Source: Octopus sinensis (lineage: Eukaryota). Taken from it: a DNA stretch of 64,000 nucleotides. The stretch lies in the NCBI RefSeq assembly GCF_006345805.1, contig NC_043001.1:121334001-121398000 (forward strand), in the 5' to 3' direction. A model generated the notes under the pieces. It made no database searches and was not told where the DNA came from. It worked only from the letters and a program-made list of their open reading frames with translations. Both the position numbers and the translations under genes were made by a program. Positions 1-24,496 of this stretch are shown piece after piece (position 1 is the first letter of the stretch; every line of letters begins with the position of its first letter).

Positions 1-77
1 ATGTTTATGTAATATGTGTCAGTTCAATTTGTATACTTGACTGTTACCTAGCCACTCGCTATGCAAGTACATCTCTT

Positions 78-173
<96 letters not shown>

Positions 174-2039: not shown

Positions 2040-2480
2040 ATTATGAACTCTTTGGATTTACTGATTACCTTGATGTCAGTGAGATTGCCATTGTCAAACA
2101 AGAGATTTGTTACCTTAGTAAGTGTCTACCCTCCAACCATGTGTTCCTCTGAAGAGAAAAAAAAAGACTAATATTTTATCTTTAATGAAAAAAGCTTCTG
2201 TGCAGTATTCTTTCTGCTTATAAAATCTTCATATTTGGTGATTTCAATGAAAGCATTTGCAGAGATAAAAAAATTTGGGATATAATTGGGAAACATGAAG
2301 CCAGAAAATGCAATAGTAATGGCTTGTTTAGTACTGCAAATGTGTTCGATTTTTGCATATACTGGGTAACTGTCAATCTCCTAGTGTGGAGCATGCTGTA
2401 TTTGAGCACCAAATATGTGGGAGTATTTATGTGATCAAGATGAAAGGCAATTAGGTCTCTCATTAATTTCTGTTTGGTGA
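2040..2480 (+). mobile_element. Old, degenerate RTE/BovB-like LINE endonuclease fragment
   Basis: Translation LMSVRLPLSNKRFVTLVSVYPPTM resembles the RTE endonuclease motif RLM.LRLPL..K..VT..SAYAPTM. A GKH..KCNSNG-like segment follows downstream. Many stops. Confidence 0.55.
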
Positions 2481-2819
2481 GTTGGCCCTGAGGAAAAATC
2501 TAGGCAACAAATTGAAATTAAGGCATGAATGCATTAGAGACACTTAGAGGATCTAGATCAAATTAGAGAAGGTGAAAACATCACAAAGTTTTTGATGGAA
2601 AAAATTGTTTCATGTTGGAATGAGTGAATTTGAATGAATGTCAATAAAATCTTAGTGTGCATGAAAAGCTTGAGAGAGATTTTTGAAAAGGTCTTAATAT
2701 TAATGTTTCCATTGTGTTTTGCTTCAAAAACTACATAGACATGACAGAATTAAATAGACATCCTTATAATTGTTAAAATTTATTTAAATTATTTATTAAT
2801 TATTATAATGTGAATATCT

Positions 2820-3120
2820 AATATTTAGTAGACAGGCTCCTTGCATTTTTGAATGCAAGGACCCTAGCAGGCATGCTACTGATCTGATGAATATTCTCTT
2901 CATGATTTTCTTGCCAAGTTTCTTGCAGTAATATCAAAAGATCTGGCTTTAAGGATGCTTTCTTTTTCTTTTTAGGAAGTATCCCATCCATCATGCCTCA
3001 GAGGTGTTCAGTAGGGTTCATATCTGGTGATTGGCTTAGCTATGGAAGCTTTTTAATGCCATTCTCTTCCAACCAATCCTGGGTCTTTTAGTTGTGCAAG
3101 AAAGCCCTATCTTCCATAAA
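2820..3120 (-). mobile_element. Tc1/mariner transposase pseudogene, C-terminal part
   Basis: Minus-strand TKKTQDWLEENGIKKLP*LSQSPDMNPTEHL* matches the Tc1 WPSQSPDLNPIEHLW motif. Confidence 0.75.
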
Positions 3121-6100
3121 TCATCATCATCATCATCATTTAGCGTCCGCTTTCCATGCTAGCATGGGTTGGACGGGTCAACTGGGGTCTGTGAAGCTGG
3201 AAGGCTTCGTCAGGCCCAGTCAGATCTGGCAGTGTTTCTACGGCTGGATGCCTTCCTAACGCCAACCACTCTGCGAGTGTAGTGGGTGTTTTTTACGTGC
3301 CACCTGCACAGGTACCAGACAGAGCTGGCGAACGGCCATGAACGGATGGTGCTTTTACGTGTCACCGGCACGGGGCCAGGCGATGCTGGCAACGGACACG
3401 AACGGATGGTGCTTTTACGTGCCACCGACACGGGGCCAGACAGAGCTGGCAAACGGCCACGAACGGACGGTGCTTTTACGTGTCACCGGCACGGGGGCCA
3501 GCCGAGGCTGACAACGAACACGAACGGATGGTGCTTTTACGTGCCACCAACATGGGGCCAGACAGAGCTGGCAAACGGCCACGAACGGACGGTGCTTTTA
3601 CGTGTCACCGGCACGGGGGTCAGCCGAGGCTGGCAACGGACGCGAACGGATGGTGCTTTTACGTGCCACCGACACGGTTGCCAGACAGAGCTGGCGAACG
3701 GCCACGAACGGACGGTGCTTTTACGTGTCACCGGCACGGGGGCCAGCTGAGGCTGGCAACGGACACGAACGGATGGTGCTTTTACGTGCCACCGACACGG
3801 GGGCCAGGCAGAGCTGGCAAACGGCCACGAGCGAATGGTGCTTTTACGTATCACCGGCACAGGTGCCAGACGAGGCTGACAGCGGACACGAACGGATGGG
3901 TCACTTAACCCCTGCTTTCTGATATATGATTTGATTTTGATTGTTCTCACTGGTCTTGCCGGGTCTTCTGACGCACAGCATACTTCCATAGGTCTCGGTC
4001 TCTGGTCATTTCCTTGGTGAGACCTAGAGTTCGAAGGTGGTGCTTCACCACCTCGACCCAGGTTTTCCTGGGTCTACCTCTTCCACAGGTCCCCTCAACT
4101 GCCAGGGTGTGGCACTTTTTCACACACCTATCTTCATCCATTCTCGCCACATGACCATACCAGTGCAATCGTCTCTCTTGCACACAACATCTGATGCCTC
4201 TTAGGTCCAACTTTTCTCTCAAGGTACTTACACTCTGTCGACTATGAACACTGACATTACACATCCAACGGAGCATACTAGCTTCATTTCTCGCGAGCTT
4301 ACGCATGTCCTCAGCAGTCACGGCCCATGTTTCACTGCCATGTAGCATGGCTGTTCGTACACATGCATCATACAGTCTGCCTTTTACTCTGAGCGAGAGG
4401 CCTTTAGTCACCAACAGAGGTAAGAGCTCCCTAAACTTTGCCCAGGCTATTCTTACTCTAGCCGTTACACTTTCAGCACACCCACCCCCACTACTGACTT
4501 GGTCACCAAGATAACGGAAGCTATCAACTACTTCTAGTTTTTCCCCCTGGAAAGTGACGGAAGTTGTTTTCTGCAGATTTTCAGAGGTTAATGCTCCCGA
4601 GCATCTACCACATACAAAAACCATCTTCCTAGTTAGCCTTCCTATGACATTGCTGCACCTCTTATGTGTCCATAGCTTACACTTGGTGCATCTTATAGAG
4701 TTTCTACCTACACCTTTTCTACAGATCGAGCAGGGCCATCTACCTGAAGGCGTTTGTGATTTGTCTACCTTCCTACTTATTATGACTTTGGTTTTAGCTA
4801 GGTTGACTCTAAGGCCCTTCGATTCTAAACCATGCTTCCACACCTGAAACTTCTTCTCCAGTTCTGATAATGATTCAGCAATTAGAGCAAGGTCATCAGC
4901 ATAGAGGAGCTCCCAGGGGCATCCTGTCTTGAATTCCTCCGTTATTGCCTGGAGGACTATGATAAATAGGAGGGGGCTGAGGACTGAGCCTTGGTGGACC
5001 CCAACCTCTACCCGGAATTCTTCACTGTACTCATTGCCAACCCTCACCTTACTAGCAGCGTCCTGTACATGGCTTGCACAGCTCTCACTAACCATTCATC
5101 TATTCCTAGTTTCCTCATTGACCACCATATGAGGGATCGGGGGACCCTGTCGAAGGCTTTCTCCATGTCAACAAAAGCCAGGTACAGGGGCTTATCTTTG
5201 GCTAGGTATTTCTCCTGCAGCTGCCTTACCAGGAATATAGCATCAGTGGTACTTTTCCCTGGCACGAACCCAAACTGCATCTCATCTAAACTAACTCTCT
5301 CTCTAATTAGTTGGCTTATGACCCTCTCTGTAACCTTCATCACCTGATCCAACAGCTTGATACCCCTGTAATTATTTGTATCTAGGGCATCACCTTTACC
5401 TTTGTAGCAGTTGACTATTATGCTGCTACACCAGTCATAGGGTATGACTCCTTCATGTATCACCTGATTAACTATACAGGTGACTAGGCTATAGCCGACA
5501 CTACCAGATATTTTGAGCATCTCTGCAGTGATACCTGATGGGCCTGGGGCTTTCCCTGTCTTCGTGCTTCTAATTGCTTTAGCTACCAAGGAACTATCAA
5601 CCCTGATAGCTGGTCCCTCTGTTGGTTCAATGTTCGGCAGACTCTCTTTATCCCATTCATTTTCTTTATTCAGCAACCTTTCATAGTGGCATCGCCAAGC
5701 CTCTCTCTTTGCATCCTCGTTTAGCGCAAGTGAACCATCTTCCATGCGAACACACTTCTCTCCCACCACATCACAATTCTCTCTCACACACAACGCGAAA
5801 CACCTCCAGTCTTTGGTCCTCACGGCGCAGAACATTGGCAAATTTTTTCTTATCTGCTTCCCCTCTGGCTAGATAGACCTGTCTCCTAGCTTCCCTTTTA
5901 GCAGTCTGATACAATTCCCTGCTACCACTATTCTTCCAGTGCTTCCAAGTCTGTCTCTTTTCTCTAATAGCCCTGTCTACGACACTGTTCCACCACCACA
6001 TTACCTTGGGACGAGAGGGGACCTTGCACCAGCCACAGATCTGGTCAGTGGCTCTCAGCAGGTTGTCCCTTAGAAACGTCCAGTTGCCCTCTACCCCATG

Positions 6101-6890
6101 TGATACTCTATCCCCTTCTACTTCATCAAAGGCTTCAAGTAACATGTCTCTAAATCTCTGTCCATTCACAGGATCCTTAAGCTTCCAGATCCTTCTTCTC
6201 CATGTTGGTCGTCTTCTGGTTGTCCTCCTACTCCTGATCCTAAAGTCACTAACTACCAGTCTATGTTGTGGGGTGCATTCTTCGCCTGGGAAGGTTTTGG
6301 CATTTATAAGTAGCCATCTCTCCCTTTGCCTGGCAAGGATGTAGTCAATTTGGCTGGTATGTTGGCCCGATCGGTAGGTGAGTAGGTGGCTGGTAGGTTT
6401 CCTGAAGTTAGTGTTGCAAATCATAAGATTATTTGCATCGCAGAACTCCAGCAGCCTGGTTCCCTCCTCGTTGCAGGAACCAGAGCCATAGCCTCCATGT
6501 ACGCCATGGAAGCCCCCAGCATGTCGTCCAACGTGACCATTGAAGTCACCAGCCACAAAGAGAAGGTCTCTGTCGTTCGTCAACGAGGTAGTCTGCAGTA
6601 GAGTGTCATAGAATCGGTCTTTCTGTCCATCAGGTAGCCCCAACTGAGGAGCATAGGCTGATATAATGGTCGCTAATCTAATCTTAAGTATTCTGTCGCA
6701 TACTCTGATTACCTCAATTACTTTATCTACCCATTTCTCAGCGATAAGTATACCCACGCCTCCAACCCCATCAGTGTTCCCTGCCCAGAAAATCTTGTAC
6801 CTGTGTTCCTTGCCTGTGAGGAACCTAGAAGAACCTCCTCTCCACCTTACTTCTTGCATGCAACATATATCCACATGCAACATATAGTGT
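3121..6890 (-). mobile_element. RTE-clade LINE, near full length, 5'-truncated and frameshifted (APE endonuclease, RT, PHD-like finger, 3' UTR, (TGA)n tail)
   Basis: ORF pieces 5771-6883 (VDICCMQEVRW, GDFNGH, IDYIL), 5044-5841 (YRGIKLL, QFGF, AFVDMEKAFDRV) and 3947-5095 (QGSVLSP, LYADD, YLG, WYGH). Tail is (tca)n on the + strand at 3121-3140. Confidence 0.95.
3300..3900. repeat. Minisatellite of about 61 bp (about 10 units, alternating variants) in the RTE 3' UTR
   Basis: The core ggtgcttttacgtg recurs at about 61-bp spacing. The following sequence alternates between gtcaccggcacg and gccaccgacacg. Confidence 0.9.
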
Positions 6891-7370
6891 TATTTAATCA
6901 TTTTACCCCTGAGGGTTATAGGAAGAAGATTTTTCTATAATATGGACACATTTATCTGAGTTTATGTATCCCTCACATTCCACCATTTCTGATTGACTAT
7001 TGCTCCAAACTGCTCTCCAGACCATCACATGTTTCATTGTTGGCTGCAATATATTCACGTGAAAATATTGGTGACTGATTCTCCAGACCCACATTCGACC
7101 AGTGTCAGAAAATACAGCAAATCTGGATTCATCAGAGAATTTGACAGTGTCCCAAAGTGCTAGTGACCTCTCTACCATCTCACTTGTCCAATCTTTTCTC
7201 CATTTGATGTTGGCTGGTCGAAGCAGTGTCTTCTTTCTTGCTGCTCTGCCATAATAGCCAATTTTGCGGAGATAATTGACAGCTATTCTGGGACTGACAT
7301 CAACTTATTCTGCTGTATTGGAGGCCTTGCAATGAGGATTATCTTACACACTTCTCTTAAGAAAGCAAAG
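6890..7370 (-). mobile_element. Tc1/mariner transposase pseudogene, N-terminal DDE part
   Basis: WDTVKFSDESRF...VMVW motifs in ORF 6903-7178. Collinear with 2820-3120 across the RTE insertion. Confidence 0.75.
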
Positions 7371-7440
7371 TGTTCTGTCAGAGGGCCTTAGTCTACCTGG
7401 GTAAGGTGATATGGACTACTTTCACGTTTAGTGAATTGAA

Positions 7441-7540
7441 NNNNNNNNNNNNNNNNNNNNNNNNNNNNNNNNNNNNNNNNNNNNNNNNNNNNNNNNNNNN
7501 NNNNNNNNNNNNNNNNNNNNNNNNNNNNNNNNNNNNNNNN
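7441..7540. other. Scaffold gap (100 N)
   Basis: Run of N. Confidence 1.
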
Positions 7541-8370
7541 ACACATATTCCCATATTCCCACTCACCCTTGTGGAAATATGATTGATTGATTGATTCTAG
7601 TTTCAGCTCATGAGCTGTGGCCATGCTGGGGCACGGTAAGAAAGATTATTTATTTCATATCGCTTCATTGTCACAAGAATATTAGAAGACACACGCTCAC
7701 AAGAAATATATCAGCAGTTTAATTGTATCAGGCGAAATAATTCCAGCTTACAAGTACAGTAAGTATTTCAGGTTTACAGATAGAATATATGTGACTATAT
7801 TCGAATTTATATTTTTCGCTTCCACTTCAGTGGCTCGATTACATAAATAACGTGAAGTGAATGACAAAATTCGAAGTTGAATGATAATATCGAAACACGA
7901 AGGAGAATATTGAAATAAGAACTGGAGGAGGATGCAAAATATAAAATAAAGTCACATTTCAGACAGAACTACACATATATATGGACATACACACGTACTT
8001 CAGCTAAAAATATTTGATGCAAACATGTAAACTAACAAACGTTATAATTTCTAATACAAATTCATATCAAAATCATTGAAATTTGGGGAACAAAAATGAG
8101 TTATTGAAATGCGAATTGAAACAAAGCAACTACAATAAAGGAATATTATATTTTCCTATTATTTCACTTTCTCTCTCAAATTCTCTCTCTCCTTCTTTCA
8201 CATTGTCTCGCTCTCTCCTATTCTCTTTGTATCATCCTAAATCTTGTTCATTCTACAAGTTTGAATTGATTTTGTTTGGTGGAGTCTGAAATTTTATACA
8301 TTTGTGAGCTTATATATCAGCATCAATTATTACTTTCGGAAAATAGTATCAAGAAACTGAAGGAACTTAC

Positions 8371-8442
8371 AATGTGTTCAAATTGGAAAGCCCCGTGAAT
8401 GTACCTTCTTTGATGGTTGAAATGTTGTTGGCACCAAGACGT
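8371..8442 (-). CDS. LRR exon A3 (72 nt, phase 2-2): (L)RLGANNISTIKEGTFTGLSNLNTL
   Basis: Acceptor tctttctttactgctttag, donor gtaagt, 72 nt, LRR consensus. I found no further exon (LRRCT/TM/TIR) below the gap. Confidence 0.93.
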
Positions 8443-9632
8443 CTAAAGCAGTAAAGAAAGAGTAAAATAGATTATATGTAAAATATTTGTGATACGACAT
8501 GAAAGACTGTGACTTCAGAATGACAGGAAGAAAAAGAAGAAAGATGACGAAGAAGAAAAAGAAGAAGAAGAAGAAGGAGAAGAAGAAGGAAGAGGAAGAG
8601 AAGAAGAAGAATAAAAAGAAGAATAAGGAGGAGGAAGAGGAGAAGAAGAAGAAGAAAAAGTAGAAAAAACGTAGAAGAAGAAGGGAGAAGATAAAGGAGA
8701 AGAAGAAGATCTAGAAGAAGAAGAAAAAGAAGAAGAAGAATTGGGGAAGAGGCGGAGGAGGAGAGGTGGGGATGTTAGGAGGAGGACAAAGGAATGGATG
8801 ACTGAGGAGGGGCAGCTGGGGAGAGCAGCAGAAGGAGCAGGAAGAGCAGGAGGGTGAGAATAAGAGGAAGAATTGGCAGAGAATGGAAAAGAGGGAGACC
8901 ATTGAAGAAGCAGGAAGTACAGAGACGAAAAAGAAGAAGAAAAAAAGAAGGCAAAGAAGAAGACAACGAAGAAGTAGAACACGAAGAAACGTAACAAGAA
9001 GAAGAAGAAGATGAAGTAGAAGAAGAATAAGAGGAAGGAGAAGAAGAAGACGACGATGAAGAAGAGGAACATGAAGGAGATGAAGAAGGAAAGAAGAAGA
9101 CGAAGAAGATGAAGAAGCAGAAAAAAAGAATAGAAAATAAAAGAAATTGAAGAAAAAGTGGATGAGTAGGACGAGAGGGAGTTTAAGGATGAGAATTGCA
9201 ATAAGAAGAAGAAGAAAAAGGAGGATAAGGAGGTGGAGGAGGAGGGGAATAGGAGATTACAAGAAAAACACAAAACAACACCACAACATAGCAAAAATTC
9301 ATTTCGGTGGTGTGGATAAATAACCACACGGCAGCACACGAATCAAAGAACATGTGTAAGAAAATAGTAGCTAAAACTTATATTAATAGTGCAGATACAT
9401 ACATACTATGAACATACACATATATATTTTCAGGAATAACTTTTTATGCGCAGACATTATCAACTAACAGTCATTGACATGTTCAGACTCAATCAAATAA
9501 ATATAACACGAATATGAGAACTGAATATGATTTACTGTATTAGAGAGTGAGAAAACATGGAAATAAGGGGATATTAAATTTAAAGACATAGTATATTCCT
9601 CATGTATAAACGACGACATTGAAAGAACTTAC

Positions 9633-9704
9633 AATTTCTCTAAGTTGTGAAGGCCTTGAAACATCTCTTTTTCAATCCTTGAAATTTTATTGTTGTCAAG
9701 ATCT
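9633..9704 (-). CDS. LRR exon B2 (72 nt, phase 2-2): (L)DLDNNKISRIEKEMFQGLHNLEKL
   Basis: Acceptor ttgtttcctgcttcag, donor gtaagt, 72 nt, LRR consensus. Confidence 0.93.
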
Positions 9705-11279
9705 CTGAAGCAGGAAACAATATTGGTTAGATTGACATAGTGTGAATTGCGATAACATATTCAATATTGTTCTTTATTTAAAGGGACAAAATTATAGGAA
9801 AATAATACAAGAAGTGGAGGAACAGGAAAGAGATTGAGGAGAAGAAGAAGAATAAGAAGAAGAAGGAGAGGAGGGGAAGGGGAAAAGAAGAAGTCAAGGA
9901 GGAAGAGAATGGGGGAGAAGAAGTAGAAGAAGAAGGAGGTGGAGGAGGAGGAGGAGGAGTAGGTGAAGAAGAATGAGGACAGGGAAGGACAATGAGATGC
10001 AGGAGGGGGAGGAAAATAGGAGGAGGTGCAGAGGGTAGAGTATAAGAAGATATAGATGATTAAAAAGTGGAGGAAGAAAAAGAAAAAGGTGAAGAAGGAA
10101 GAAGAGAAAAATAGGTGGAGGCGGAGGAGTAGGAGGAAGGGGAAGAAGAAGAAGACAAGGAGACGAGAGGAAGAGCAAGGGAAGTATAAGAAAAAGAAGG
10201 AGAGGAGGATAAGTAGGAGGAAGAAATAGAAGAAGAAGAAGAAACGGAAGAAGAGAAAAGAAGAAAAGAAGAAAAGAAGAAGAAGAAGAAGAAGAAGAAG
10301 AAGAAGATGATGTGTTGAAGACGAAACTGAAATTTTTCTCAAGATATCAAATAATTCAAGGATAGAACCGAAAAATTTTGGGCGAGAAGACATGGGTGAA
10401 AAATCAGGGAATATACGAATCAGAAATCAACATATCAAATGCACTCATACACATTCTTATATTCATAGTATCAACAACGAATGCGGTATGCACATTCACA
10501 TCACCACCCTATTCCCACTCACCCTTGGGGAATATGGTGAGAGAGATTTTTATTTCATCTCGCTTCATTGTCACAAGAATATTAAAAACACACGCTTACA
10601 AGAATAATATCAGCAGTTTAATTGTATCAGGCCAATATTCCAGCTTACAAGTACAGTAATATTTCAGGTTTACAGATAGAATGTATGTGACTATATTATT
10701 CGAATATATATTTTCCGCTTCCACTTCAGTTGCTCTATTACATGAATAACATGAAGTGAATGACAAAATTCGAAGTTGAATGATAATATTGAAACGCGAA
10801 GGAGAATATTGAAATAAGAAATGGAGGAGGATGCAAAATATAAAATAAAGGAATAATATATTCACATTTCACATAGAACTACACTTATATATGAACATAC
10901 ACACGTACTTCAGCTAAAAATATTTGATGCAAACATGTAAACTCACAAACGTTACCATTTCTAATACAAATTCATATCAAAATCATTGAAATTTGGGGAA
11001 TCAAAAATGAGTTATCGAGATGCGAATTGAAACAAAGCAACTACAATAAAGGACAATTATATTTTTCCTATTACTTCATTTTTTCTATCAAATTCTCTCT
11101 CTTCTTTCCCGTTGTCTCGCCCTCTTATATTCTCTTTGTATCTCCCTAAATCTTGTTCATTCTACAAATTTGAATTGATTTTGTTAGGTTCAGTTTGAAA
11201 TTTTATACCTTTGTGAGCTTATATATAAGCATCAATTATTTCTTTCGGAAAATAGTATCAAGAGACTGAACGAACTTAC

Positions 11280-11351
11280 AATTCTTTTAAATTTGAAAGC
11301 CCCGTGAATGTACCTTCTTTGATGGTTGAAATGTTGTTCTCATACAGATAC
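11280..11351 (-). CDS. LRR exon A2 (72 nt, phase 2-2): (L)YLYENNISTIKEGTFTGLSNLKEL
   Basis: Acceptor tctttctttactgctatag, donor gtaagt, 72 nt, LRR consensus. Confidence 0.93.
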
Positions 11352-12640
11352 CTATAGCAGTAAAGAAAGAGTAAAATAGATTATATGGAAAATATTTGTG
11401 ATACGACATCAAACACTGTGACTTCAGAATGAAAGGAAGAAAAAGAAGAAAGATAACGAAGAAGAAGTAGAAGAAGAAGAAGACTGAGAAGAAGAAGAAG
11501 AAAGAAGAAGGAGAGGAAGGAGAATTGACGAGGAGGTGGAGGAGGCAGTGAAGGTGGAGAGGTGGGGAGGTTAGGAGAAGGACAAAGGAAGGGATGACGG
11601 AGCAGGGGGCCGCTAGGGGTAACAGCAGAAGAAGCAGGAAGAGCTGCAGACTGTGAATAAGAGGAAGAATTGGCAGAGAATGGAAAAGAGGGAGACCAGT
11701 GACGGAGCAGAAAGTACAGAGAAGAAAAAGAAGAAAAAGAATAAGGAGAAAAAGAAGAAGAAGAAGAAGAAGCAGAGAAGAAGGAGATGAAGATGAAGAA
11801 GAAGACAAAGAAAAGGAAGAAGTAGAAGAAGAAGTGGAACATGAAGAAGATGAAGAAGGAAAGAAGAAGGCAAAGAAGAAGACAAAGAAGAAGTAGAACA
11901 CGAAGAAAAGTAACAATAAGAAGAAGATGAAGTAGAAAAAGAATAAGAGGAAGAAAAGGAAGAAGCAGAAGAAGAAGAGGAACATGAAGAAGAAGAAGAA
12001 GAAGAAGAAGAAGAAGAGGAACATGAAGAAGAAGAAGAAGAGGAACATGAAGAAGAAGAGGAACATGAAGAAGTTGAAGAATGAAAGAAGAAGACGTAGA
12101 AGATGAAGAAGAAGAAAAATAGAAGAAGAGAACGAAGAAATTGAAGAACAAGGAGGATGAGTAGGACGAAGAGGGGAGGTTGAGGAGGAGAATTGCAATA
12201 AGAAGAAGAAGAAAAAGAAGGAGAAGTTGGTGGAGGAGGAGGGGGAAAAGGATAATTACAAGAAGAAGAACAAAACAACAACAACAACAATAACAAAAAA
12301 ATTATCTCGGTGGAAGTGTGGATAAATAACCACACGGCAGCACAGAATCAAGAGAACAATGTGTAAGAAAATAGTAGCTAAAACTTATATTAATAGTGCA
12401 GATACATACATACATATGAACATACACATATATATTTTCAGGAATAACATTTTTATGCAGACAATTATCAACTGACAGTCATTGACATGTTCAGACTCAA
12501 TCAAATAAATATGACACGAATATGAGAACTGAATATGATTTACTGTAATAGAGAGTGAGAAAACATGGAAATAAGGGGATATTAAATTTAAAGACATAGT
12601 ATATTCCTCATGTATAAACGACAACATTGAAAGAACTTAC

Positions 12641-12712
12641 AATTTCTCTAAGTTGTGAAGGCCTTGAAACATTTCTTTTTCAATCCTTGAAATTTTATTG
12701 TTGGCAAGACGT
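12641..12712 (-). CDS. LRR exon B1 (72 nt, phase 2-2): (L)RLANNKISRIEKEMFQGLHNLEKL
   Basis: Acceptor ttgtttcctgcttcag, donor gtaagt, 72 nt, LRR consensus. Confidence 0.93.
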
Positions 12713-15016
12713 CTGAAGCAGGAAACAATATTGGTTAGATTGACATAGTGTGAATTGCGATAACATATTCAATATTGTTCTTTATGAAAAGGGACAAAAT
12801 TATAGGAAAATAATACGAGAAGAAGAGGAACAGGAAAGAGATTGAGGAGAAGAAGAAGAAGAAGAAGAAGGAGAGTAGGGGAAGGGGAAAAGGAGAAGGA
12901 GGAGAAGTAGAAGAAGTAGAAGTAGGAGAGGAAGAAAAAGAAGAAGAAAAAAAAGGAGGATAAGGTGTGGGAGGGGAAAGGAAGAATTACAAGAAGAAGG
13001 AGAAGGAGGAGGAGGCAAGCGGTGGAGGAGGATGATGAAGTGGAAGAAGAAGTTAGAGAAAAAGAAAAAAAAAGAAGAAAAAGAAGGAGAAGAATAACAA
13101 AATGAAAATATGAAGAAGAAAGAGTGGGAAGGGGAGAAGTAGATGAAGAAGTAGAAAGTAGAAGAAGAAGAAGAAAAAATGAAGTAGAAAAAAGAGAAGT
13201 TGAAGAAAAAGTAAAATAAGGAGGAAGATGAGGAGGAGAAGTAGAAGAAGAAGAAGAAGAAGTAGTAGGAAAAGAAGACGAAGAAGAAAGAAGGAGGAGG
13301 AGGAGGAGGAAAAGTAGAAGAAGAAGTAGAAAAAGAAAGAAGAAGAAAAAAGACGAAGAAGAAGAAGAGGAAGAGGAGGAAAAAGGAGTAGGAGGATGAA
13401 GGCGAAGAAGAAGAGAAAGGAGGAGGAGGAGAAGAATTTGAAGTAGTAGAAGACGAAGAAAAAAAGAAAGTGGTAGAAAGAGAAGAAGAAAGGTAAAAGA
13501 TGGAGGAAGACGGGGAAGAGAAGTAGAAGAAGAAGACGAAGAAGGAGAAGAAGAAGAAGAATTAGAAGAAGAAAAAGAAAAAGGAGCAAGAGGGGAGAGT
13601 GGGAGGAGGTGGACGAGAATTACAAGAAGAAAAAGGAGGGGGATGGTGGGAGGAGGAAGTGAATTACAAGAAGTAAATGTAGATGAGGAAGAAGAAGAGA
13701 ATAAAATTTAAAGAAGAAAAGAAAGAGGACGAGGTTGAGAATGAGAAGAAGAAGAATAGTTTAAAAGAAGGAGAAGAAGAAGAAAATGAAGAAGAAGAAG
13801 AGAAGAAAAAGAAGGAGGAGGATGAGCAGGAGGTGAGGCGGAGGAAGAAGAAGAAGAAGAAGAAGAAGAAGAAGAAGAAGAAGAAGAAGAAGAAGAAGAA
13901 GAAGAAGAAGACGACGACGAAGAAGAAGAAGAAGAAAAAGAAGAAGAAGAAGACGAAGAAGAAAAAGAAAGGAAGGAGAAGAAGAAGAAGAAGAAAAAGA
14001 AAAAGAAGAAGAAGAAAGAAGTTTTATTGAAAATCATGGTGTTGAAGACGAAACTGAAAATATTCTCAAAACATCAGGAAATAATTCAAGGATAGAGCGA
14101 AAAATTTTGGGCGAGAAGACATGGCTGAAAAATCAGGGAATATATGAAATCAGAAATCAACATATTCAAATGCACTCATTCGCATTCTTATATTCATAGT
14201 ATCAACGACGGAATGCGCTATGCACACTCACATCACACATATTCCCACTCACCTTTGTGGAAACATGGTGAGAGAGATTATTTATTTAATATCGCTTCAT
14301 TGTCACAAGAATATTAGAAAACACACGTTTACAAGAAATATATCAGCAGTTTAATTGTATCAGGCCAAATATCCCAGCTTACAACTACAATAAGTATTTC
14401 AGGTTTACAGATAGAATGTATGTGACTATATTATTCGAATATATATTTTCCGCTTCCACTTCAGTTGCTCTATTACATAAATAACGTGAAGTGAATGACA
14501 AAATTCGAAGTTGAATGATAATATCAAAACACGAAGGAGAATATTGAATTAGGAAATGGAGGAGGATGCAAAATATAAAATAAAGGAATAATATATTCAC
14601 ATTCACACAGAACTACACTTATATATGAACCATACACATATACTTCAGCTAAAAATATTTGATGCAAAACATGTAAATAAACAAAACGTTACCATTTCTA
14701 ATACAGATTCATAAAAAAGTCATTGAAATTTGGGGAACAAAAATGAGTTATTGAGATGCGAATTGAATCAAAGCAACTACAATAAAGGAACCTTATATTT
14801 TTCCTATTATTTCACTTTCTCTCTCAAATTCTCTCTCTTTCTTTCACATTGTCTCGCTCTCTTCTATTCTCTTTGTATCTTCCTAAATCTTGTTCATTCT
14901 ACAAATTTGAATTGATTTTGTTTGGCGCAGTCTGAAATTTTATACATTTGTGAGCTTATATATCAGCATCAAAGATTACTTTCGGAAAATAGTATCAAGA
15001 AATTAAACGAACTTAC

Positions 15017-15088
15017 AATTCTTTTAAATTTGAAAGCCCCGTGAACGCACCTTCTTTGATGGTTGCAATGTTGTTGGAACCAAGATAT
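15017..15088 (-). CDS. LRR exon A1 (72 nt, phase 2-2): (L)YLGSNNIATIKEGAFTGLSNLKEL
   Basis: Acceptor tctttctttactgctatag, donor gtaagt, exactly 72 nt, no stop. Matches the typical 24-residue LRR consensus. Confidence 0.93.
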
Positions 15089-15849
15089 CTATAGCAGTAA
15101 AGAAAGAGTAAAATAGATTATATGTAAAATATTTGTGATACGATATCAAACACTGTGACTTCAGAATGAAAGGAAGAAAAAGAAGAAAGATAACGAAGAA
15201 CAAAAAGAAGAAATAGAAGAAGAAAAAGAAGAAGGAGAATTGGGGAGGAGGTGAAGAAGAAGAGGAAGAATAAGAATAAGAAGAAGACGAAGGAGAAGAC
15301 GAAGAAGAAGAAGAAGAAGAAGAAGAAGACGAAGAAGAAGAAGAAGAAGAAGAAGAGAGAAGAAAAATAAGAAGAAGAAAAAAAAGAAGACGAAGAGGAA
15401 GAAGTAGAAGACGAAAGAGAGTGAGGAGGAGGTGGAGGAGGCGGAGGGGGATGAGAGGTGTGGAGGTTAGGAGGAGAACAAAGGAAGGAATGACTGAGGA
15501 GGGGCAGCTTGGGGTAGCTGCAGAAGGAGCAGGAAGAGCAGGAGGATGAGTATAAGAGGAAGAATTGGCAGAGAATGGAAGAGAGGGAGACCAGTGACGA
15601 AGTAGAAAGTACAGAGAAGAAAAAGAAGAAGATAAAGAAGAAGAAGAAGAAGAAGAAGAAGAAGAAGAAGAAGAAAGAAGCAGGAGGAGAGAATGTCTTA
15701 ATGTGGCAGCCGTTTCGTGTTTATTTCCTACTTGACTTGCACAACCTCGAGTATCCGCTTCGCGTCTCAATGTACCAACACACACATCCACACACATACA
15801 CGCACATGTATGCATATATACGCACATACACACATATGTATATCTACCT

Positions 15850-16620
15850 CTGGGTTCGAGAATGTGTGCGAACCTCGTCCCGGTAGTGGTGTCCTTTTTA
15901 CCTGTCGATATAGTTTATTATCGAATCTAAAGGTGTTGTCTTCTAGTTCCCGGCGTGTGTCTTTGGAAATGCGTTTTGAAGCGTTCGTCCATCCGTCCGC
16001 TATGTTTTTCTACCCAGTGTTTGATTGCTTCCAGGCCCAAAGTGTGATGTATTAGTATAAAGATTAGTCAAATCTTTTAAATATAGTACGTTCTGGGACA
16101 GTGGGTGGAATGTGTTTGAGGAAATCCTTATCGTCTCGGGTATAGCTGGCCATTAATGGGCATAACGGTTTGAGGAGTATATCCAAAAGATGGCTCAGTT
16201 GTTGTGTTGGGGCTCAAGGTCCAGCAACTGTTGGTCTCAATTTGATGTCAGTAGGTCTTAGTATTTTTATATGCTGATCCTTGCATTTTGGAGCATTCGT
16301 GGATCTTGGGTGATCCATAGAAATTACTCTCTTTCATTACAGAGCTGCATAAATAATCTTTCTCTTTATCTGTGAACGAACGTTGGTATTCATTTATCAG
16401 ACTTTTGAGTGTATTCATTATTACTTTTTCCGGGTGTCTTGGTTCTTCCTTGTAGCAGGATTGGTCTGTTTCCAATATTTTATCTTTATAGTAGTTTTGG
16501 TCCGTGAATGCTTTCACCCTTCCCCAATCGGTTTCTTTTAGGATGATTGAATTGTCATTCTTCAGTTTGTAAGCTTCCTTTTCTTCTTCATGAAGGTTCT
16601 GTTTGCATTTACGGATATTT
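15850..16620 (-). mobile_element. Penelope-like element RT fragment (degenerate), in intron of the LRR gene
   Basis: Minus strand gives NFYGSPKIH, then LRPTVAGP..LSHLLDILLKPL..SYTRDDKDFL and LEDNTFRFDNKLYRQVK, typical of the N-terminal half of PLE RT. Multiple stops and frameshifts. Confidence 0.8.
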
Positions 16621-18289
16621 TATTATATAAGATATAAAACAGATTTAAGTCACTACGTAAAGTGTGAATGAAAACACACATGCATGTAAAATATGAGAAA
16701 AGAATGGATGTTCAAAATATTTGTGATTTGAATTAGATTTACAAAGCCTTCGTTGCAACATCAGTATTCAGTGGAAGATATTTTTATCATCTCAGAAGTC
16801 AGCTTTATTTATAAATATCTTGTTTCTGTCCAATGAGCATTCTATTTGTTATTACACTTTGCTGTAAAAAGTAATTTATCTTTGCAAAAGTAAACTCCTT
16901 TCCTTTGCATAATTGATGCATAAAAGTTCTTCACAAAAATAAACCCCCAAAACTTCAAGACTGAAATAATAGACTAGGAAGGAAAACATAACAGAAATAG
17001 AAAGGGATTTATTAATAGAACTGGTGAAGGTAGAGTGGGGAAACCCTGATATAATTTTGAGTCATGTGCTACAAAGGAGAACAACCTTACATGGTGATTT
17101 AACTGGCTTAGGGTGTTATTTAAAAAAGGGATGTGATTACATACATTGCCTTAGTTTTTTCGTCTTTTTTTAGTCCTTTGCTTCTTTTTCTTGCTGTATT
17201 AAACCTCAGTTTGTTCCCATTATTAACTACCTATGCTAAATCCTTCATCCCCTAAGTAGCATCCCTCTTCATTATTCCTGTAAAGGTTGACCTGCAACAG
17301 CTCAAACGGAATATTAATGATATCTGCCTCACAAGTATTGGAGATCTTGCAGGAGTTATAAAACGTGTCTGATCCTTTTTTCAAAATCGGTAAAATAAAA
17401 AGTGTGGGATTTTAACTCAGATCACAAAGAACTGGACAATATACTGCAAGGTGTCATATTCGACGTCGTCATAGTTGCATTTGTTCATTGAACTGTTATA
17501 AGTTTTTATTGATCTCAGAAATGAATGACGCAAGGTTGACCTTGGCGGGACTTGAAGTCAGATTGCCGTGTGTCAGAACGCAATGTATTCTGCTAGACGG
17601 TCAAATGATTTGTGCCAAACCTCGCTCAAGTTATGAACGATGAAAATATCTAACTTATTAAACAGAACTTCAACTTTACTATTCAACATCTTGAGTTATA
17701 CGAGATTAGGAATTCCATTATTGAAACTTTTCTCCTTTATTTGTCAAAACGTTCCAAATGTTTTGAGAAATAGATCTGATCGAATGAATTGATCCACTTT
17801 AGTATTAGAATATTTGATTAAAACTGAAAGTTTAAGGTGATTAATGCAATGATGCAAGCCAATTAACTGGAAATAATCACCTGGAAGAGCAATGTGTTGC
17901 AACAGAGTATTTGTTATGATTGATGTATCAAATAATTAGTCTTTTTTATTCTATTCCATTTCTTGAGACGTTAAATTTTAATAATTTACTTAAAAATTAC
18001 GTAAGTTTTCAGGTGAACGGGGATACATCAATCAGCCGAAACTTCAATTAAGCTTGCATAATTTTGTAATAAGGTTTATTGTGTTCATGATAGGGTAAAT
18101 TTTACTGATGACATTCTATCAAAAATAAATTCCTCAAACTTTGTTCAAACAACACTATTTTGATTTCTTCACTTAGGTATTTTTAGAATTTGGTAATTTA
18201 AGCGGATCTCGTCATTATCTGCTGTTTAATCCATCTGTTTCATTTTTAATTATAAAAATAATAATTTCTTCTATAGGAACAAACCTGAA

Positions 18290-18475
18290 ATTTTGGGAAA
18301 GGGACAAGTCCTTTACATTGATTTCAGAGATTAATTGCTATTTATTTTACCGACTCCAAAAGAATGAAAAGCAAAGTCAACCTCGACAGAATTTAAAATC
18401 GAAACGTAAAGACGAACGAAATACCGCTTAACATTTTGTCTGGCGTGCACAACGATTCTGATAGCTCGGTGCATA
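18290..18475 (-). mobile_element. tRNA-derived SINE (family B). Further copies at about 760-930, 17395-17600, 30130-30240, 30465-30680, 30695-30780 and 39330-39545
   Basis: Recurrent head with A-box-like tggcag..gttagc and B-box gagttcaaattcc, followed by gaggtcgactttgcctttcatcc. Confidence 0.75.
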
Positions 18476-18930
18476 TTCTATTATAAAATTAACACAAACA
18501 ATAATTAACAATTATTCTGTGACACGATCAACTGATATTATATCATATTACTGTAATAATAAGCAACAATTCAACTAATTAATGATATAATATAACTATG
18601 TGGAATACACGTTTTCTTAGCACTAAAGTTTTTACACTGTCCGTTCATTGAATATACCGTAAGATTTGATAAGTTCAGACAAATGACATCAAAGTCAGAT
18701 ACAAGTCATATCCAATCTCTGTGTATGCGATGTTATATATTATAAATTCAATATGGTAGGAAACAGTTTATTTGACTTCACAACAGGTAACATATCGATT
18801 TGTTTTACTCTAACATAAGATTGTGCTTAAAGCTGTGAGATAAACAGCATAAGCGATTAGCTGAGAACATAATCAATGAGAATTTAAAATATTGGATGTG
18901 GAAAATATGTAGAAAGTGTCAAATACTTAC

Positions 18931-19121
18931 AAATATTCAACATTCGTCGGAATTGGTTGTGGAATCGATGGTAAATTGCGATGTGCACAATTTATATTTG
19001 TTGTAAGTGAATTGCAAGTACATATCTTGCATATATCTGAATCAGCTTGAGTCTCCAAAAACAATATCGTACACAGTATCAACACAAGAGACCGTCTATA
19101 TGATACTACGTGGTGAAACAT
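18931..19121 (-). CDS. First coding exon of a secreted or membrane LRR protein: signal peptide + LRRNT cap (MFHHVVSYRRSLVLILCTILFLETQADSDICKICTCNSLTTNINCAHRNLPSIPQPIPTNVEYL)
   Basis: ATG at 19121-19119. Hydrophobic N-terminus followed by the C-x2-C-x-C-x8-C-x4-L-x2-IP LRRNT pattern. Acceptor (polypyrimidine tract + CAG) just above 19141. The exon ends TT|GTAAGT at 18931, a phase-2 donor matching the downstream LRR exons. Confidence 0.92.
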
Positions 19122-19669
19122 ATTGCCAGGCGTAGATTTATCTGTAAAAGAAGAAAATAGGAAATGTCAGAGATTTCAATGTTATTAACTTCAAATTGCA
19201 GATTCTCCGAAGGAACTAAAATTCACCCCTGTTCCACATGACAAACATATTTTTGTTTTCGTGATTGGATATTTAAAGCTAAAAAATTAAATTTCGATAA
19301 ATTAGTGTGAAGAAATTTATAAAAATATTATAGCTTTAACGCGTAATAATATCAAAGAAAACACCAAACACACACACACAAACACAAACGCACTCCTACA
19401 TACATCTGTAACCATACTCGGGGGGGGGGTCTAATATATATACAAAACTAACGAACCATGAGCTTCGTGGACCCTAAATACGCAGTGGTTGTAAACCCAG
19501 TTGGGTCGTTAAATCCGATGGGACCCCACAAGCAACTGTACTGTACCGAGGGATTTTTCCTGTACCCCAGGTTTAGAAGCGTTCATACAAATTTTTCCTC
19601 AAATACACTTTCATCATTTCATTTTACTTAATTTTTTTAAATGAAAACAAAATAAAGCATGAACGTAAA

Positions 19670-20482
19670 TCTATGTATATAAAACTCAACTTGTGTGCCT
19701 GTCTGTGTATCTGTGTGTGTGTGTGTGTGTTTAACTTCCCGGGACATTTTCTCCTAGCCAACAAATCGTAGAACCACCAAACATGGGTCACTTAAAGTTT
19801 AGGCAAATGAAAATTGAACTGCGCTATTTCTGTTCCGAAATTCATATCGCAAGTGCAAAAATCGATAATGTGTTTGTTTAGGCCTTCTCCCATGCATTGA
19901 ATAGTGAACTTTACTCAGTCAGCTGTTTGACGTGAACAGTGTTCACCACGCGTGCAAGCATGCGTAAATTTCATGAAAAATAAAAAATCAAGATATAAAA
20001 ACGAATCGCCGTAAACATTGTAGAAATTCGGCAAAGAAATGAATTTTCGGGATGTAGCCAGGAGGGTTTTTTCGTATTAATCGTTTGAACTTTGTGAACT
20101 CATACCATTTGTTTTCATAAAATTTTTAACGCTTTGAATTAAATGTGACCATTTTGCGTTGCGTCTGCAGTTTGAATCACTTTAACCAAATCTTAGCAGG
20201 CCGGATTTTTGATCATCACGATACATCGCCAGCGACTCCCTGAAACTCTCCTCTGATGTCCCCTTTGAGAAATACTGATCTAAAAGAATAATTCAATTAT
20301 GCAATTATTTGATAAACAAAAATTTATGAAACGCTTCTTCGTACTTCCTATTGAGGAAATGGAACACATAAGCGCAAAAATAGAGGGCACTAAATGCTTG
20401 ATTTTAAAACCAAGTTTAGCTTAATTCGCGCGTGCATAGAACGCACGAGCGCACGAGCGCACGAGCCGGGCAATACTGCTAG
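19670..20482 (+). mobile_element. Non-autonomous Helitron (813 bp)
   Basis: Starts A|TC (tctatgtatataaaactcaac..gtgtg..ctgtctg). Ends with a GC-rich subterminal repeat followed by CTAG|T, at an AT target with no TSD. Confidence 0.7.
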
Positions 20483-20682
20483 TGAACAAATGGACCTACA
20501 TCAAACAAAGCAAATTTCTTTGGGGACATAAATAGACACAAGAAAATAAAGAAAGTGGAAAAGGAAACAACAACAACAAAAGAAACATTGACAGCAAAAC
20601 AAATTAAAAAGCTCTGAAAATTACATATACACTAATATCTATTTATCAAACAATTTATATATCTCTCTCCCCTTACACACAT

Positions 20683-20759
<77 letters not shown>

Positions 20760-20907
20760 AGAGAAGAGAGAGAATAATAAGGTATTCAAAACGTTGGATG
20801 ATTATATATTTTTTATGTATTTAAATTCTATTTACATTTTGGCGCTTGCTTCCATTATCGATAACTTTATATCTGTACATCACTTCAAACTCTCTCTCTC
20901 TCTCTCT

Positions 20908-20957
<50 letters not shown>

Positions 20958-21059
20958 GGGGGGGGTGTATGTATGTATGTATGTATGTATTGATAGATCG
21001 CTAGCACTACACATTCTTTCTTCTCTCCTTGTTTCTCTCCCTGTTTCTTTCCGTGTTCC

Positions 21060-21185
21060 TTTCTGTGGAAGAGCCTAGACTCGAAACGTTAAAAACTTTT
21101 TCGCTTCCCGAGCATTATACTAATACATCAGTTTGTTTTCTACATCACCTGTCTTCGTCTTTTTTTTCTGAATTCTCCTGTATAT

Positions 21186-21228
<43 letters not shown>

Positions 21229-21345
21229 TATTTCTAATTTTGTTGTTTTGATTAACATGAACATGGCCTCCCTTAACATTCAAGAACTTACTGCAACTGA
21301 CCAACTCACATCAACACCGTCACAACATCATCTCACTTCATATCA

Positions 21346-21376
<31 letters not shown>

Positions 21377-21400
21377 TTATTATCATCATTATATATATAT
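21060..21400 (+). mobile_element. Probable Penelope pLTR fragment with a degenerate hammerhead-like motif at about 21060-21095
   Basis: ttt CTGTGGA a GAG cctaga CTC GAAA CG TT aaa resembles a minimal type I hammerhead, but core A6 is mutated. Confidence 0.45.
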
Positions 21401-21441
21401 TTTAATTTTATTATTATTATTATCATTATTATTTTTAATAC

Positions 21442-21492
<51 letters not shown>

Positions 21493-21509
21493 TATTATAA
21501 TTATTATTG

Positions 21510-21740
21510 CGTGAGAGAGCAGTGCATCCCATCAAAGTGACACTGGGGTAAAATATACGAAACCCAGTATACACATCATGACTACCCGTCTGATAAGGGT
21601 ACACCAGGCACATGCATCAAAACCATATGTGCGCAACATGGTGATCTCATATCAAAATAAACAGCACATGACCTTGCAGGTGGGGCCCAGTTAGAATTTT
21701 CTTCTGTTCGAGTATCCCATCCCGCTCAAAAGGTCGTGAG
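21510..21740 (-). mobile_element. Short copy of the TAA-associated 3'-UTR-type retroelement also seen at 34735-35270
   Basis: Near-identical to about 34735-34965 and abuts an (ATT)n/(ATC)n tract. Confidence 0.75.
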
Positions 21741-21949
21741 TCAAGTTGTCTGATCTTTTGGCTATATATTTTTTGTTTATTCATATCATTTATCTAATTT
21801 TAATCTAATTATTTTATTATTACAAAAATTAATTCATTAAATTAATTTCATTCTTTTTTACTACTTATTTTATTCTAATTATCTTTATTTAGTTATTTTT
21901 ATTTGTAGAACCTAATTTAAGGGTTTATACACCTGTCATATCAATTATC

Positions 21950-24480: not shown

Positions 24481-24496
24481 CAAAACAACAGAACCC

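Follow-up and report, generated by a model that had tools for sequence, protein, structure and literature searches.

Hypervariable one-repeat cassette exons in an unannotated Octopus sinensis gene, probably the 5' part of a young octopod adhesion GPCR paralog

This study concerns a leucine-rich repeat (LRR) gene on the minus strand of a 64,000-nucleotide stretch of the Octopus sinensis genome (contig NC_043001.1, positions 121,334,001 to 121,398,000), the whole of which we call the window. Between 8371 and 19141, reading through the strand together with a mechanical scan for 72-nt intervals that lie between AG and GT and carry an open, LRR-like frame revealed a signal peptide/LRRNT exon and five 72-nt cassette exons. 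All six exons, which had been predicted to splice in frame into a signal peptide, an LRRNT cap and a series of LRRs, are present, open and bounded by canonical splice sites. Exon 1 (18931-19141) holds the 3' end of the 5' untranslated region, the ATG at 19121, the signal peptide and the LRRNT cysteine cluster, and ends on tt followed by the donor gtaagt, in phase 2; tblastn recovered it at 19121-18930 with 100% identity. It encodes MFHHVVSYRRSLVLILCTILFLETQA followed by DSDICKICTCNSLTTNINC, its product reading MFHHVVSYRRSLVLILCTILFLETQADSDICKICTCNSLTTNINCAHRNLPSIPQPIPTNVEYL. As judged by eye from the sequence, its N-terminus has the make-up of a signal peptide, first basic (RR) and then hydrophobic (LVLILCTILFL) up to TQA/D, and after this hydrophobic stretch comes the cysteine cluster C31-x2-C34-x-C36-x8-C45; in the relatives described below, LRRNT gives a weak Pfam match only (0.005-0.01). 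The first 41 residues are 100% identical to those of the O. sinensis protein P0002. The acceptor at 19141 is used in the annotated relatives P0044, P0046, P0049 and P0067, whose models read ...[Y/N/D]KSTPGNMFHH, and no upstream 5' exon matching MLMSRKKEGILN or MSFNKWMVHLDN was found in the window between 19 and 30 kb.

The cassettes follow in the order A1 (15017-15088), B1 (12641-12712), A2 (11280-11351), B2 (9633-9704) and A3 (8371-8442), all on the minus strand, and encode (L)YLGSNNIATIKEGAFTGLSNLKE(L), (L)RLANNKISRIEKEMFQGLHNLEK(L), (L)YLYENNISTIKEGTFTGLSNLKE(L), (L)DLDNNKISRIEKEMFQGLHNLEK(L) and (L)RLGANNISTIKEGTFTGLSNLNT(L), respectively. Each is exactly 72 nt long, stop-free, preceded by ag and followed by gtaagt, and carries a single 24-residue LRR; each starts at the third base of a leucine codon and finishes in tt, so that it is entered and left in phase 2. 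A1, which has an open frame and an LRR motif between its AG and GT, can be aligned with 12 other A-type cassettes. The LRR solenoid is made of two alternating cassette types, A with the consensus xLxxNNIxTIKEGxFTGLSNLKxL and B with xLxxNKISRIEKEMFQGLHNLEKL, and the repeats fit LxxLxLxxNxIxxIxxxxFxxLxxL, as is typical of extracellular LRRs. The spliced 184-aa product matches the Pfam families LRR_8 (3.6e-39), LRR_4 (1e-19) and LRR_1 (1.5e-13), and sequence matches in the PDB include IGFALS, LGR4, LRRC15 and TLR3.

The four inter-cassette introns (15016-12713, 12640-11352, 11279-9705 and 9632-8443, within 8443-15016 on the minus strand) are homologous from unit to unit, their unique flanks being 90-97% identical. 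A repeat search of the window found the A-exon neighbourhood three times, at spacings of 2909 and 3737 nt, and the B-exon neighbourhood twice, with 3008 nt between the copies and 97% identity; given this spacing and intron identity, the exons belong to tandemly duplicated A+B units of ~3 kb, introns included. The arrays grew through tandem duplication of these units. Between the window units the alignable intron parts are 90-91% identical. The start of the intron after A3 (7541-8370, minus strand) can likewise be aligned over ~740-750 nt with the introns that follow A1 and A2 (90-91% identity), before it ends at an assembly gap of 100 N (7441-7540) that cuts the gene and leaves the remainder of the array, together with the LRRCT, GAIN and seven-transmembrane (7TM) exons, outside the window.

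Searching with the spliced product retrieved six O. sinensis RefSeq models (P0001-P0006, 70-86% protein identity), which are named slit-homolog-like, LRRC4-like or LINGO-like and combine a near-identical exon 1 with A and B cassettes in differing numbers and orders. No identical product exists in the protein collection searched, in which the window copy is unannotated, and the earlier description of the gene as hidden was therefore fair. The probable counterpart in O. bimaculoides, P0008, is clearly more diverged. None of the relatives is an invariant one-to-one ortholog with a fixed repeat number; they carry 2 to 12 or more cassettes, and the gene of P0044 spans 105 kb. Four of the five O. 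sinensis loci compared here (L001-L005) end at contig ends and four models stop within ~1-1.4 kb of them, indicating that the arrays break assemblies. The fifth, L005, is a gap-free 52.7-kb contig with a complete N-terminal region, which comprises exon 1, 12 regular cassettes together with a penultimate LRR-like exon, one exon for LRRCT and two for the Cys-rich module. One-to-one orthology between the cassettes of the window and those of L005 was considered and rejected, since all unit-to-unit identities lie between 82 and 90% and no partner stands out. Promoter, exon 1 and intron 1 (window ~15.6-20.5 kb) are 92-95% identical to L001-L005 over 4.5-6.6 kb of nucleotide sequence. The 5' flank and promoter region (19142-24915, minus strand) is thus part of a duplicated block common to the paralogous loci; its coverage is contiguous up to window 20306-20516 depending on the locus, breaks at ~20.5-21.7 kb, and resumes as a second block (~21740-24915, i.e. 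~21.7-24.9 kb) that is 92-95% identical in three loci, L001, L003 and L005.

Within the window, A2 and A3 differ at 13 positions, distributed as 8, 0 and 5 over nt 1-13, 14-55 and 56-72 (hypergeometric P for none in the central 42 = 1.7e-6), A1 and A2 at 10 positions, 7 of them in the first 13 nt, and B1 and B2 at 4; these counts and their placement, which formed the core of the original prediction, were reproduced exactly. We extended the comparison to 25 cassette exons with their flanks from the window and L001-L005, among which 13 A-type and 10 B-type sequences are distinct (23 in all); 20 of these exons come from the five other loci, and 19 of the 20 consist of 72 nt between AG and GT. In this larger sample the cassettes again behave as real exons that were recently amplified. 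Nucleotide diversity per site reaches 0.449 (A) and 0.333 (B) in exon nt 1-13 and 0.203 and 0.102 in nt 56-72, against 0.066 and 0.040 in the core (nt 14-55), 0.041 and 0.032 in the last 60 intron bases (-60 to -1), and 0.068 and 0.047 in the 300 downstream intron bases of a gap-aware alignment. The acceptor flanks are therefore as near-identical as had been claimed (diversity 0.03-0.04), and two islands of ~12 nt per exon diverge 4-10 times faster than their immediate surroundings, introns included.

The same contrast is seen in Nei-Gojobori estimates of the substitution rates. At codons x5, x7, x8, x2 and x3 of the repeat the nonsynonymous rate (dN) is 0.73 for A and 0.59 for B cassettes, 4-6 times the intron divergence (K, 0.19 and 0.09), whereas the other 18 codons have a synonymous rate (dS) of 0.20 and 0.10 and a dN of 0.06 and 0.03; the proposal of diversifying selection is supported by this excess of x-codon dN over intron K. 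Codon by codon, the proportion of nonsynonymous differences (pN) is high only at x5, x7, x8 and x3 (0.34-0.68) and, in type A, also at x18 (0.50) and x12 (0.26). At the protein level, 40 family proteins yielded 38 distinct cassettes of type A and 14 of type B, in which entropy at x5, x7, x8 and x3 amounts to 2.1-3.1 bits (A) and 1.5-2.4 bits (B) and elsewhere to at most 0.73 bits, except for A-type x10, x12 and x18 (1.2-1.6). E, G, S, Y, D, N, R, K, W and T predominate at the variable positions, where aliphatic residues are scarce. In the AlphaFold2 model of the relative P0072 the LRR solenoid has pLDDT (predicted local distance difference test) scores of 85-96, and its strands, recurring every 24 residues, coincide exactly with x3-L4-x5; its closest folds are Nogo receptor, NGL-3, hagfish VLR-A, LGR4 and LINGO-1. 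The x3-L4-x5 strand lines the concave face of LRR solenoids, and x18 lies off the concave strand by LRR geometry. The original claim that variation falls on the x positions of this face thus holds for x3, x5, x7 and x8, in both pN and entropy; it does not hold for x2, the site of a K/N change, which is not generally variable, nor does it cover the off-face x18 (exon nt 40-42, e.g. window 15049-15047, in EG[A/T/V/L]F), which is variable in type A (entropy 1.6 bits) and in type B an invariant M, rarely L.

What lies beyond the cassettes can be read from the relatives. Queries taken C-terminal to the LRRs, followed by an HRM-GAIN-GPS fragment, returned strong E-values only for octopod proteins (O. 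bimaculoides, O. sinensis, O. vulgaris and Argonauta), and the sole matches outside Octopoda, an insect ADGRA3 and a gastropod protein, were weak (E 1e-5 to 1e-6). As a composite of these relatives, the family architecture is signal peptide, LRRNT, A/B cassettes, LRRCT, a Cys-rich module, an 'NISRAxEH' domain, an HRM-like domain, GAIN, GPS and 7tm_2. LRRCT reads ...NNLMKCGCHLPAFVKYIK...GTC...SQC (NNLMKCGCHLP...GTC...SQC); the Cys-rich module has 12 cysteines and ends in CC-x4-CN; the 'NISRAxEH' domain comprises ~90 residues; Pfam matches in the relatives are 0.0007-0.002 for the HRM-like domain, 1e-11 to 1e-14 for GPS and 1e-24 to 1e-42 for 7tm_2. LRRCT, the Cys-rich module, HRM, GAIN, GPS and the first transmembrane helix (TM1) were found across P0046, P0057 (weak GAIN match, 0.0016), P0065, P0070 and P0114, the last of which joins LRR to GPS. 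O. vulgaris P0136 shares the same MFHHVVSYRR exon 1 and extends to GPS (9e-11) and TM1-2, and LRR_8, GPS and 7tm_2 occur in one protein in O. bimaculoides P0135, P0141 and P0139 and in P0144 (1155 aa), which is encoded on contigs of ~4.2 kb, the size of a spliced transcript. The window gene is a young paralog in this octopod-specific adhesion G-protein-coupled receptor (GPCR) family.

Two features of these proteins may be recorded separately. The CC-x4-CN ending of the Cys-rich module recalls Ly6/uPAR as a description of cysteine spacing only; assigning the module as Ly6/uPAR-like and the following domain as SEA-like found no Pfam support up to E 10, and AlphaFold2 confidence over both is <50. 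In addition, P0135 (1283 aa) carries a Death domain at residues 1203-1277 (Pfam 3.3e-6), in the cytoplasmic C-terminus after a long, low-complexity (QSTS)n linker, and the combination of LRR, GPS and 7TM with Death is an unusual link between GPCR and death-domain signalling.

Members of the family are annotated in RefSeq/ENA as ADGRG6-like, GPR126-like, ADGRA3, slit homolog-like or LRRC4-like. An octopus-specific expansion of adhesion GPCRs, 'group 3', has been defined from 7TM/GPS regions (Ritschard et al. 2019, PMC6408891); it comprises 21-22 sequences, 5 out of 22 contain LRRs, one has a Death domain, and its genes partly co-localise on scaffolds. Expression was reported mainly in the axial nerve cord, suckers and skin of O. 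bimaculoides and in the gills and skin of C. minor, and positive selection was detected on branches but at 'no specific amino acid sites' (PMC6408891). Like that group, the family found here is restricted to octopods, combines LRR with GPS and 7tm_2 and has one Death-domain member (P0135), and in P0136 a window-type exon 1 is joined to GPS and transmembrane helices; unlike its published members, the window copy is unannotated and incomplete. From this matching domain inventory it is very likely that the two are the same. The gene would then encode ectodomain of a receptor expansion already reported (PMC6408891), and not the undescribed stand-alone immune or self-recognition system that had been thought possible. 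The tissues in which expression was reported are axial nerve cord, suckers, skin and gills; no immune tissue is implicated by this, and an immune or self-recognition role is unsupported.

Taking these data together, we consider it probable that window 8371-19141 is the 5' part of an unannotated, young paralog of the octopod-specific LRR adhesion GPCR family, in which the exposed positions x3, x5, x7 and x8 have been diversified. Its solenoid is assembled from symmetric one-repeat exons of 72 nt, of types A and B, and the codons for x3, x5, x7 and x8 have diverged several times faster than introns and synonymous sites, probably through diversifying selection on a concave, putatively ligand-binding face. 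The outcome would be a germline-encoded, possibly splice-expanded set of LRR binding surfaces coupled to GAIN/7TM signalling. Judging from the published expression of the expansion, its role is most likely the recognition of surfaces or ligands in peripheral neural, sucker, skin or gill tissue, and not classical immunity.

Several points weigh against this interpretation. The window shows exon 1 and five cassettes only, the 3' part being lost in a gap followed by transposons, so that the copy could be truncated or dead, and the locus is known from genomic sequence alone. The tie to the published group rests on domain content and not on accession numbers. The cassettes compared are paralogs from several loci, perhaps of two sister species, and pairs of them are not independent; Nei-Gojobori estimates on five codons are crude; gene conversion can lower the divergence of introns and cores, which serve as the neutral yardstick; and x18 is variable although it lies off the concave face. 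Finally, some of the annotated isoforms considered below, those with hybrid cassettes, are modelling artefacts.

The first of these points leads to an alternative that we regard as unlikely, though it carries some weight, namely that the window copy is a non-functional 5' fragment (promoter, exon 1 and cassettes) cut by a transposon insertion and still intact through its youth. The array ends in the gap, behind which come a Tc1/mariner remnant and a nested long interspersed nuclear element (LINE) of RTE type. With the relatives' segments as tblastn queries, no further LRR, LRRCT, Cys-rich, HRM or GAIN exon was found in window 1-8370, and window 1-7440 contains no family exon and no homology to family loci, giving no support for a continuation of the gene there. 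The same alternative is favoured by the lack of an identical annotated product and by the dispersal of the 5' block to at least six loci at 92-95%. The sole window match of the relatives' downstream segments in tblastn is a partial Cys-rich-module exon at 63390-63519, which lies on the plus strand, opposite to the array, and directly after a second assembly gap of 100 N (63289-63388); it reads CSTYRKCVEAMRNNTLICNKR / ANGTSCTGCCVGHLCNKNDFIG with a gtaagt donor, and a 1-nt frameshift near 63452 also fits a decaying copy. Together with the first gap, the second bounds a 55.7-kb contig (7541-63288), and the partial exon could belong either to a neighbouring family member or, if that contig is inverted, to a continuation of the same gene. 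Inversion would aim the LRR array at 63390-63519, and that a scaffold error may split one gene is only an idea. Set against a dead fragment are the six open exons with their canonical splice sites and a dN/dS of ~0.3 at non-x codons across the family; that four of the five O. sinensis loci also stop at contig ends points to a problem of assembly rather than of biology.

It is improbable that the variation arose without positive selection, that is, from unconstrained x positions in exons whose remaining parts are kept similar by conversion or very recent duplication, so that the contrast is overstated. Cores and introns are indeed near-identical, the proportion of synonymous differences (pS) at A-type x codons is also high (0.47), and distances between cassettes measured in the upstream introns do not correlate with those in the downstream introns (r ~0), a hint of mosaic histories. 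However, conversion would then have to skip repeatedly two islands of ~12 nt inside a homogenised 400 nt, which is hard to picture without selection against homogenisation. In B-type x codons pN is 0.41 against a pS of 0.13, and the distance over nt 1-13 exceeds both intron distances in 44 of 45 B pairs and 64 of 78 A pairs. Moreover, Y, W, R, D, N, S and G, the residues present at these sites, are what one expects on a binding surface and not a random draw. The near-identity of cores and introns would fit recent duplication and/or gene conversion, and diversifying selection at the contact residues over such a background appears to be the most economical reading of the sequences.

Because all cassettes are entered and left in phase 2, any subset of them keeps the reading frame when spliced. 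The isoforms annotated for O. sinensis and O. vulgaris indeed differ by whole cassettes of 24 aa: the L005 gene has 13 RefSeq isoforms with lengths of 409, 385, 361 and 337 aa, a second gene of O. sinensis is listed with 525, 501 and 477 aa, and the independent O. vulgaris annotation has isoforms of 489, 465 and 441 aa. Annotated products hold 2-11 cassettes in series. One L005 cassette (11131-11203, YLSENNISTIKEGVFTGLSNLKK) has an extra A in a homopolymer run that makes it 73 nt long and frameshifted, and the RefSeq models avoid this exon by means of an internal AAG/GT; the resulting 'hybrid' cassettes were considered as evidence of recombination and rejected. The isoforms are suggestive of splice-based cassette diversity in vivo.

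The introns may contribute to this. In each window cassette intron the sense strand holds CTT-rich tracts of 0.4-1.2 kb that are at least 90% pyrimidine, and across the window and L005 (7256-35733) the cassette introns each hold 0.4-2.1 kb of such sequence. TCTT occurs there at 33-86 per kb (37-83 per kb in the window alone), compared with a background of 4.5-7.5 per kb in window 25-62 kb. The tracts are present in 12 of 12 cassette introns of L005, and the L005 intron after the last LRR is without one. CU-rich tracts are binding platforms of PTB-type splicing repressors, and polypurine/polypyrimidine microsatellites are recombination-prone and difficult to assemble. The tracts may therefore act in exon skipping through PTB-type repression, in unequal recombination, or in both, and they are a possible cause of the assembly breaks.

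We compared this organisation with known receptor systems. Vertebrate ADGRA2 and ADGRA3 (GPR124/GPR125) similarly carry LRRNT, LRRs and LRRCT, followed by HRM, GAIN/GPS and a secretin-type 7TM. Octopus members have PF26588 matches, one of them with the UniRef name 'ADGRA2/3 GAIN domain-containing protein'; one O. bimaculoides member is named ADGRA3, and there is a weak match to insect ADGRA3 (E 7.7e-6). These naming hints suggest that the family may descend from ADGRA-type LRR adhesion GPCRs. In vertebrates each ADGRA gene exists in a single copy and encodes an Ig domain and a small, constant set of LRRs, whereas the octopod family has a Cys-rich module in the place of Ig, multiplied genes, 2 to 12+ repeats and a hypervariable face. 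LGR4-6 and the glycoprotein-hormone and relaxin receptors also encode one LRR per exon of 72-75 nt and set an LRR ectodomain on a 7TM receptor, and sequence similarity to LGR4 ectodomains was found at E 4e-60 to 2e-58; LGRs, however, have a rhodopsin-type 7TM, one-to-one orthologs and a fixed repeat number, in contrast to 7tm_2 plus GPS, many copies and variable number in the octopods. As in arthropod Dscam1, tandemly duplicated alternative exons may be a source of receptor isoforms, but Dscam1 picks one exon per cluster, whereas the octopod cassettes are additive and their annotated isoforms step by 24 aa. In its mode of action the gene would resemble other diversifying LRR recognition receptors. 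In genomic organisation it is closest in principle to the one-LRR-per-exon ROCO receptors of the brown alga Ectocarpus, for which Zambounis et al. 2012 (PMC3341825) describe intense exon duplication and shuffling, diversifying selection on the LRR and, as a proposal of the authors, somatic recombination. Those proteins are cytosolic ROC-COR GTPases of an unrelated lineage with an unrelated signalling chassis, and the octopod family gives no hint of the somatic recombination outlined there (PMC3341825).

A further comparison is with the variable lymphocyte receptors (VLRs) of lampreys and hagfish. Their variability is concentrated on concave beta-strand positions and is generated somatically, when flanking cassettes are inserted, by a process like gene conversion, into a germline gene that is incomplete; their expression is restricted to lymphocytes. 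The octopod proteins have a capped LRR solenoid of similar size, with hagfish VLR-A (2o6q) among the top structural matches, and are hypervariable at the concave strand positions x3, x5, x7 and x8, with x18 of A-type cassettes as the exception; the polypurine/polypyrimidine tracts in the cassette introns would also suit recombination. That the gene is a VLR-like immune receptor whose cassettes are somatically assembled or diversified is nevertheless very unlikely. Each cassette is a complete exon with its own AG and GTAAGT, standing in line in germline and transcriptional order within one transcription unit, and annotated mRNAs join the cassettes by ordinary splicing, so that somatic assembly is not indicated. 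Octopod relatives continue into HRM, GAIN, GPS and 7TM, unlike VLRs, whose stalk is glycosylphosphatidylinositol-anchored or secreted, and the expansion has been reported as expressed in nerve cord, sucker, skin and gill. Equally remote is an assembly artefact in which alleles or collapsed paralogs were stitched in tandem into a false A1/A2/A3 and B1/B2 series, for although gaps of 100 N lie on both sides of the contig and arrays of this kind break assemblies, with O. sinensis models stopping at contig ends, the five cassettes lie in one gap-free stretch (7541-63288), their units differ by 9-17% in introns with unequal microsatellite lengths, which is above the allelic divergence we would expect, and the independent, gap-free L005 has the same layout in its 12 regular cassettes and penultimate LRR-like exon.

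Repeats also occur elsewhere in the window. Just past the 7441-7540 gap, the Tc1/mariner-like remnant with its nested RTE-type LINE spans window 2830-7440 (minus strand); the LINE has an endonuclease open reading frame (ORF) at 5771-6883, reverse-transcriptase ORFs at 3947-5841 and a ~122-nt tandem repeat at its 3' end (~3290-3900). A second, truncated copy of this LINE (62420-63288, plus strand) adjoins the other gap. Two neighbouring near-identical copies of another reverse-transcriptase element lie at 31375-37080 (minus strand), with ORFs repeated at 31904-32467 and 36271-37080. At 57986-58923, ~1 kb of a degenerate (ATGT/ACAT)-type microsatellite gives rise to long spurious ORFs (MYVCMYVC...) on both strands, and TG/CA-rich tracts also occur near 15780-15840 and 19370-19400.

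To conclude, the expansion of adhesion GPCRs in octopods was already known; what appears to be new lies in the layout of the cassettes, the hypervariability at particular sites and the CU-rich introns. One-exon-per-repeat cassettes, hypervariability restricted to x3, x5, x7 and x8, near-identical introns, CU-rich introns and cassette-skipping isoforms are undescribed in the literature searched, and the SPLASH octopus analysis contains no mention of LRR or GPCR genes. The arrays explain why present assemblies and annotations break up or lack genes of this family, and the variable codons supply candidate selected sites, which the earlier 7TM-centred study did not find.

Adhesion GPCRs are usually conserved and low-copy, and many have poorly defined ligands. 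In the octopod lineage, the LRR ectodomain of one such receptor appears to have been turned into a modular, rapidly diversifying binding surface, which combines one repeat per symmetric exon, up to about a dozen cassettes, dozens of gene copies or fragments, and four contact positions that vary in each repeat. Such a genomic signature is normally that of immune or chemosensory recognition families, and here it is found in a family reported to be expressed in arm nerve cord, suckers, skin and gills. Going further, we tentatively raise the possibility that octopuses possess a large adhesion GPCR repertoire of germline-encoded and splice-diversified, paratope-like LRR surfaces that selection keeps diverse, in effect VLR-like variability on a GPCR chassis. 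If so, single sensory, neural or epithelial cells could bear distinct recognition specificities, the CU-rich intronic tracts would make cassette inclusion stochastic or regulated, and the ligands might be chemotactile cues, microbial surfaces or marks of self and non-self, as in the self-avoidance of arm and skin. The family thus offers a testable candidate for the recognition of surfaces, microbes or self by the octopus.

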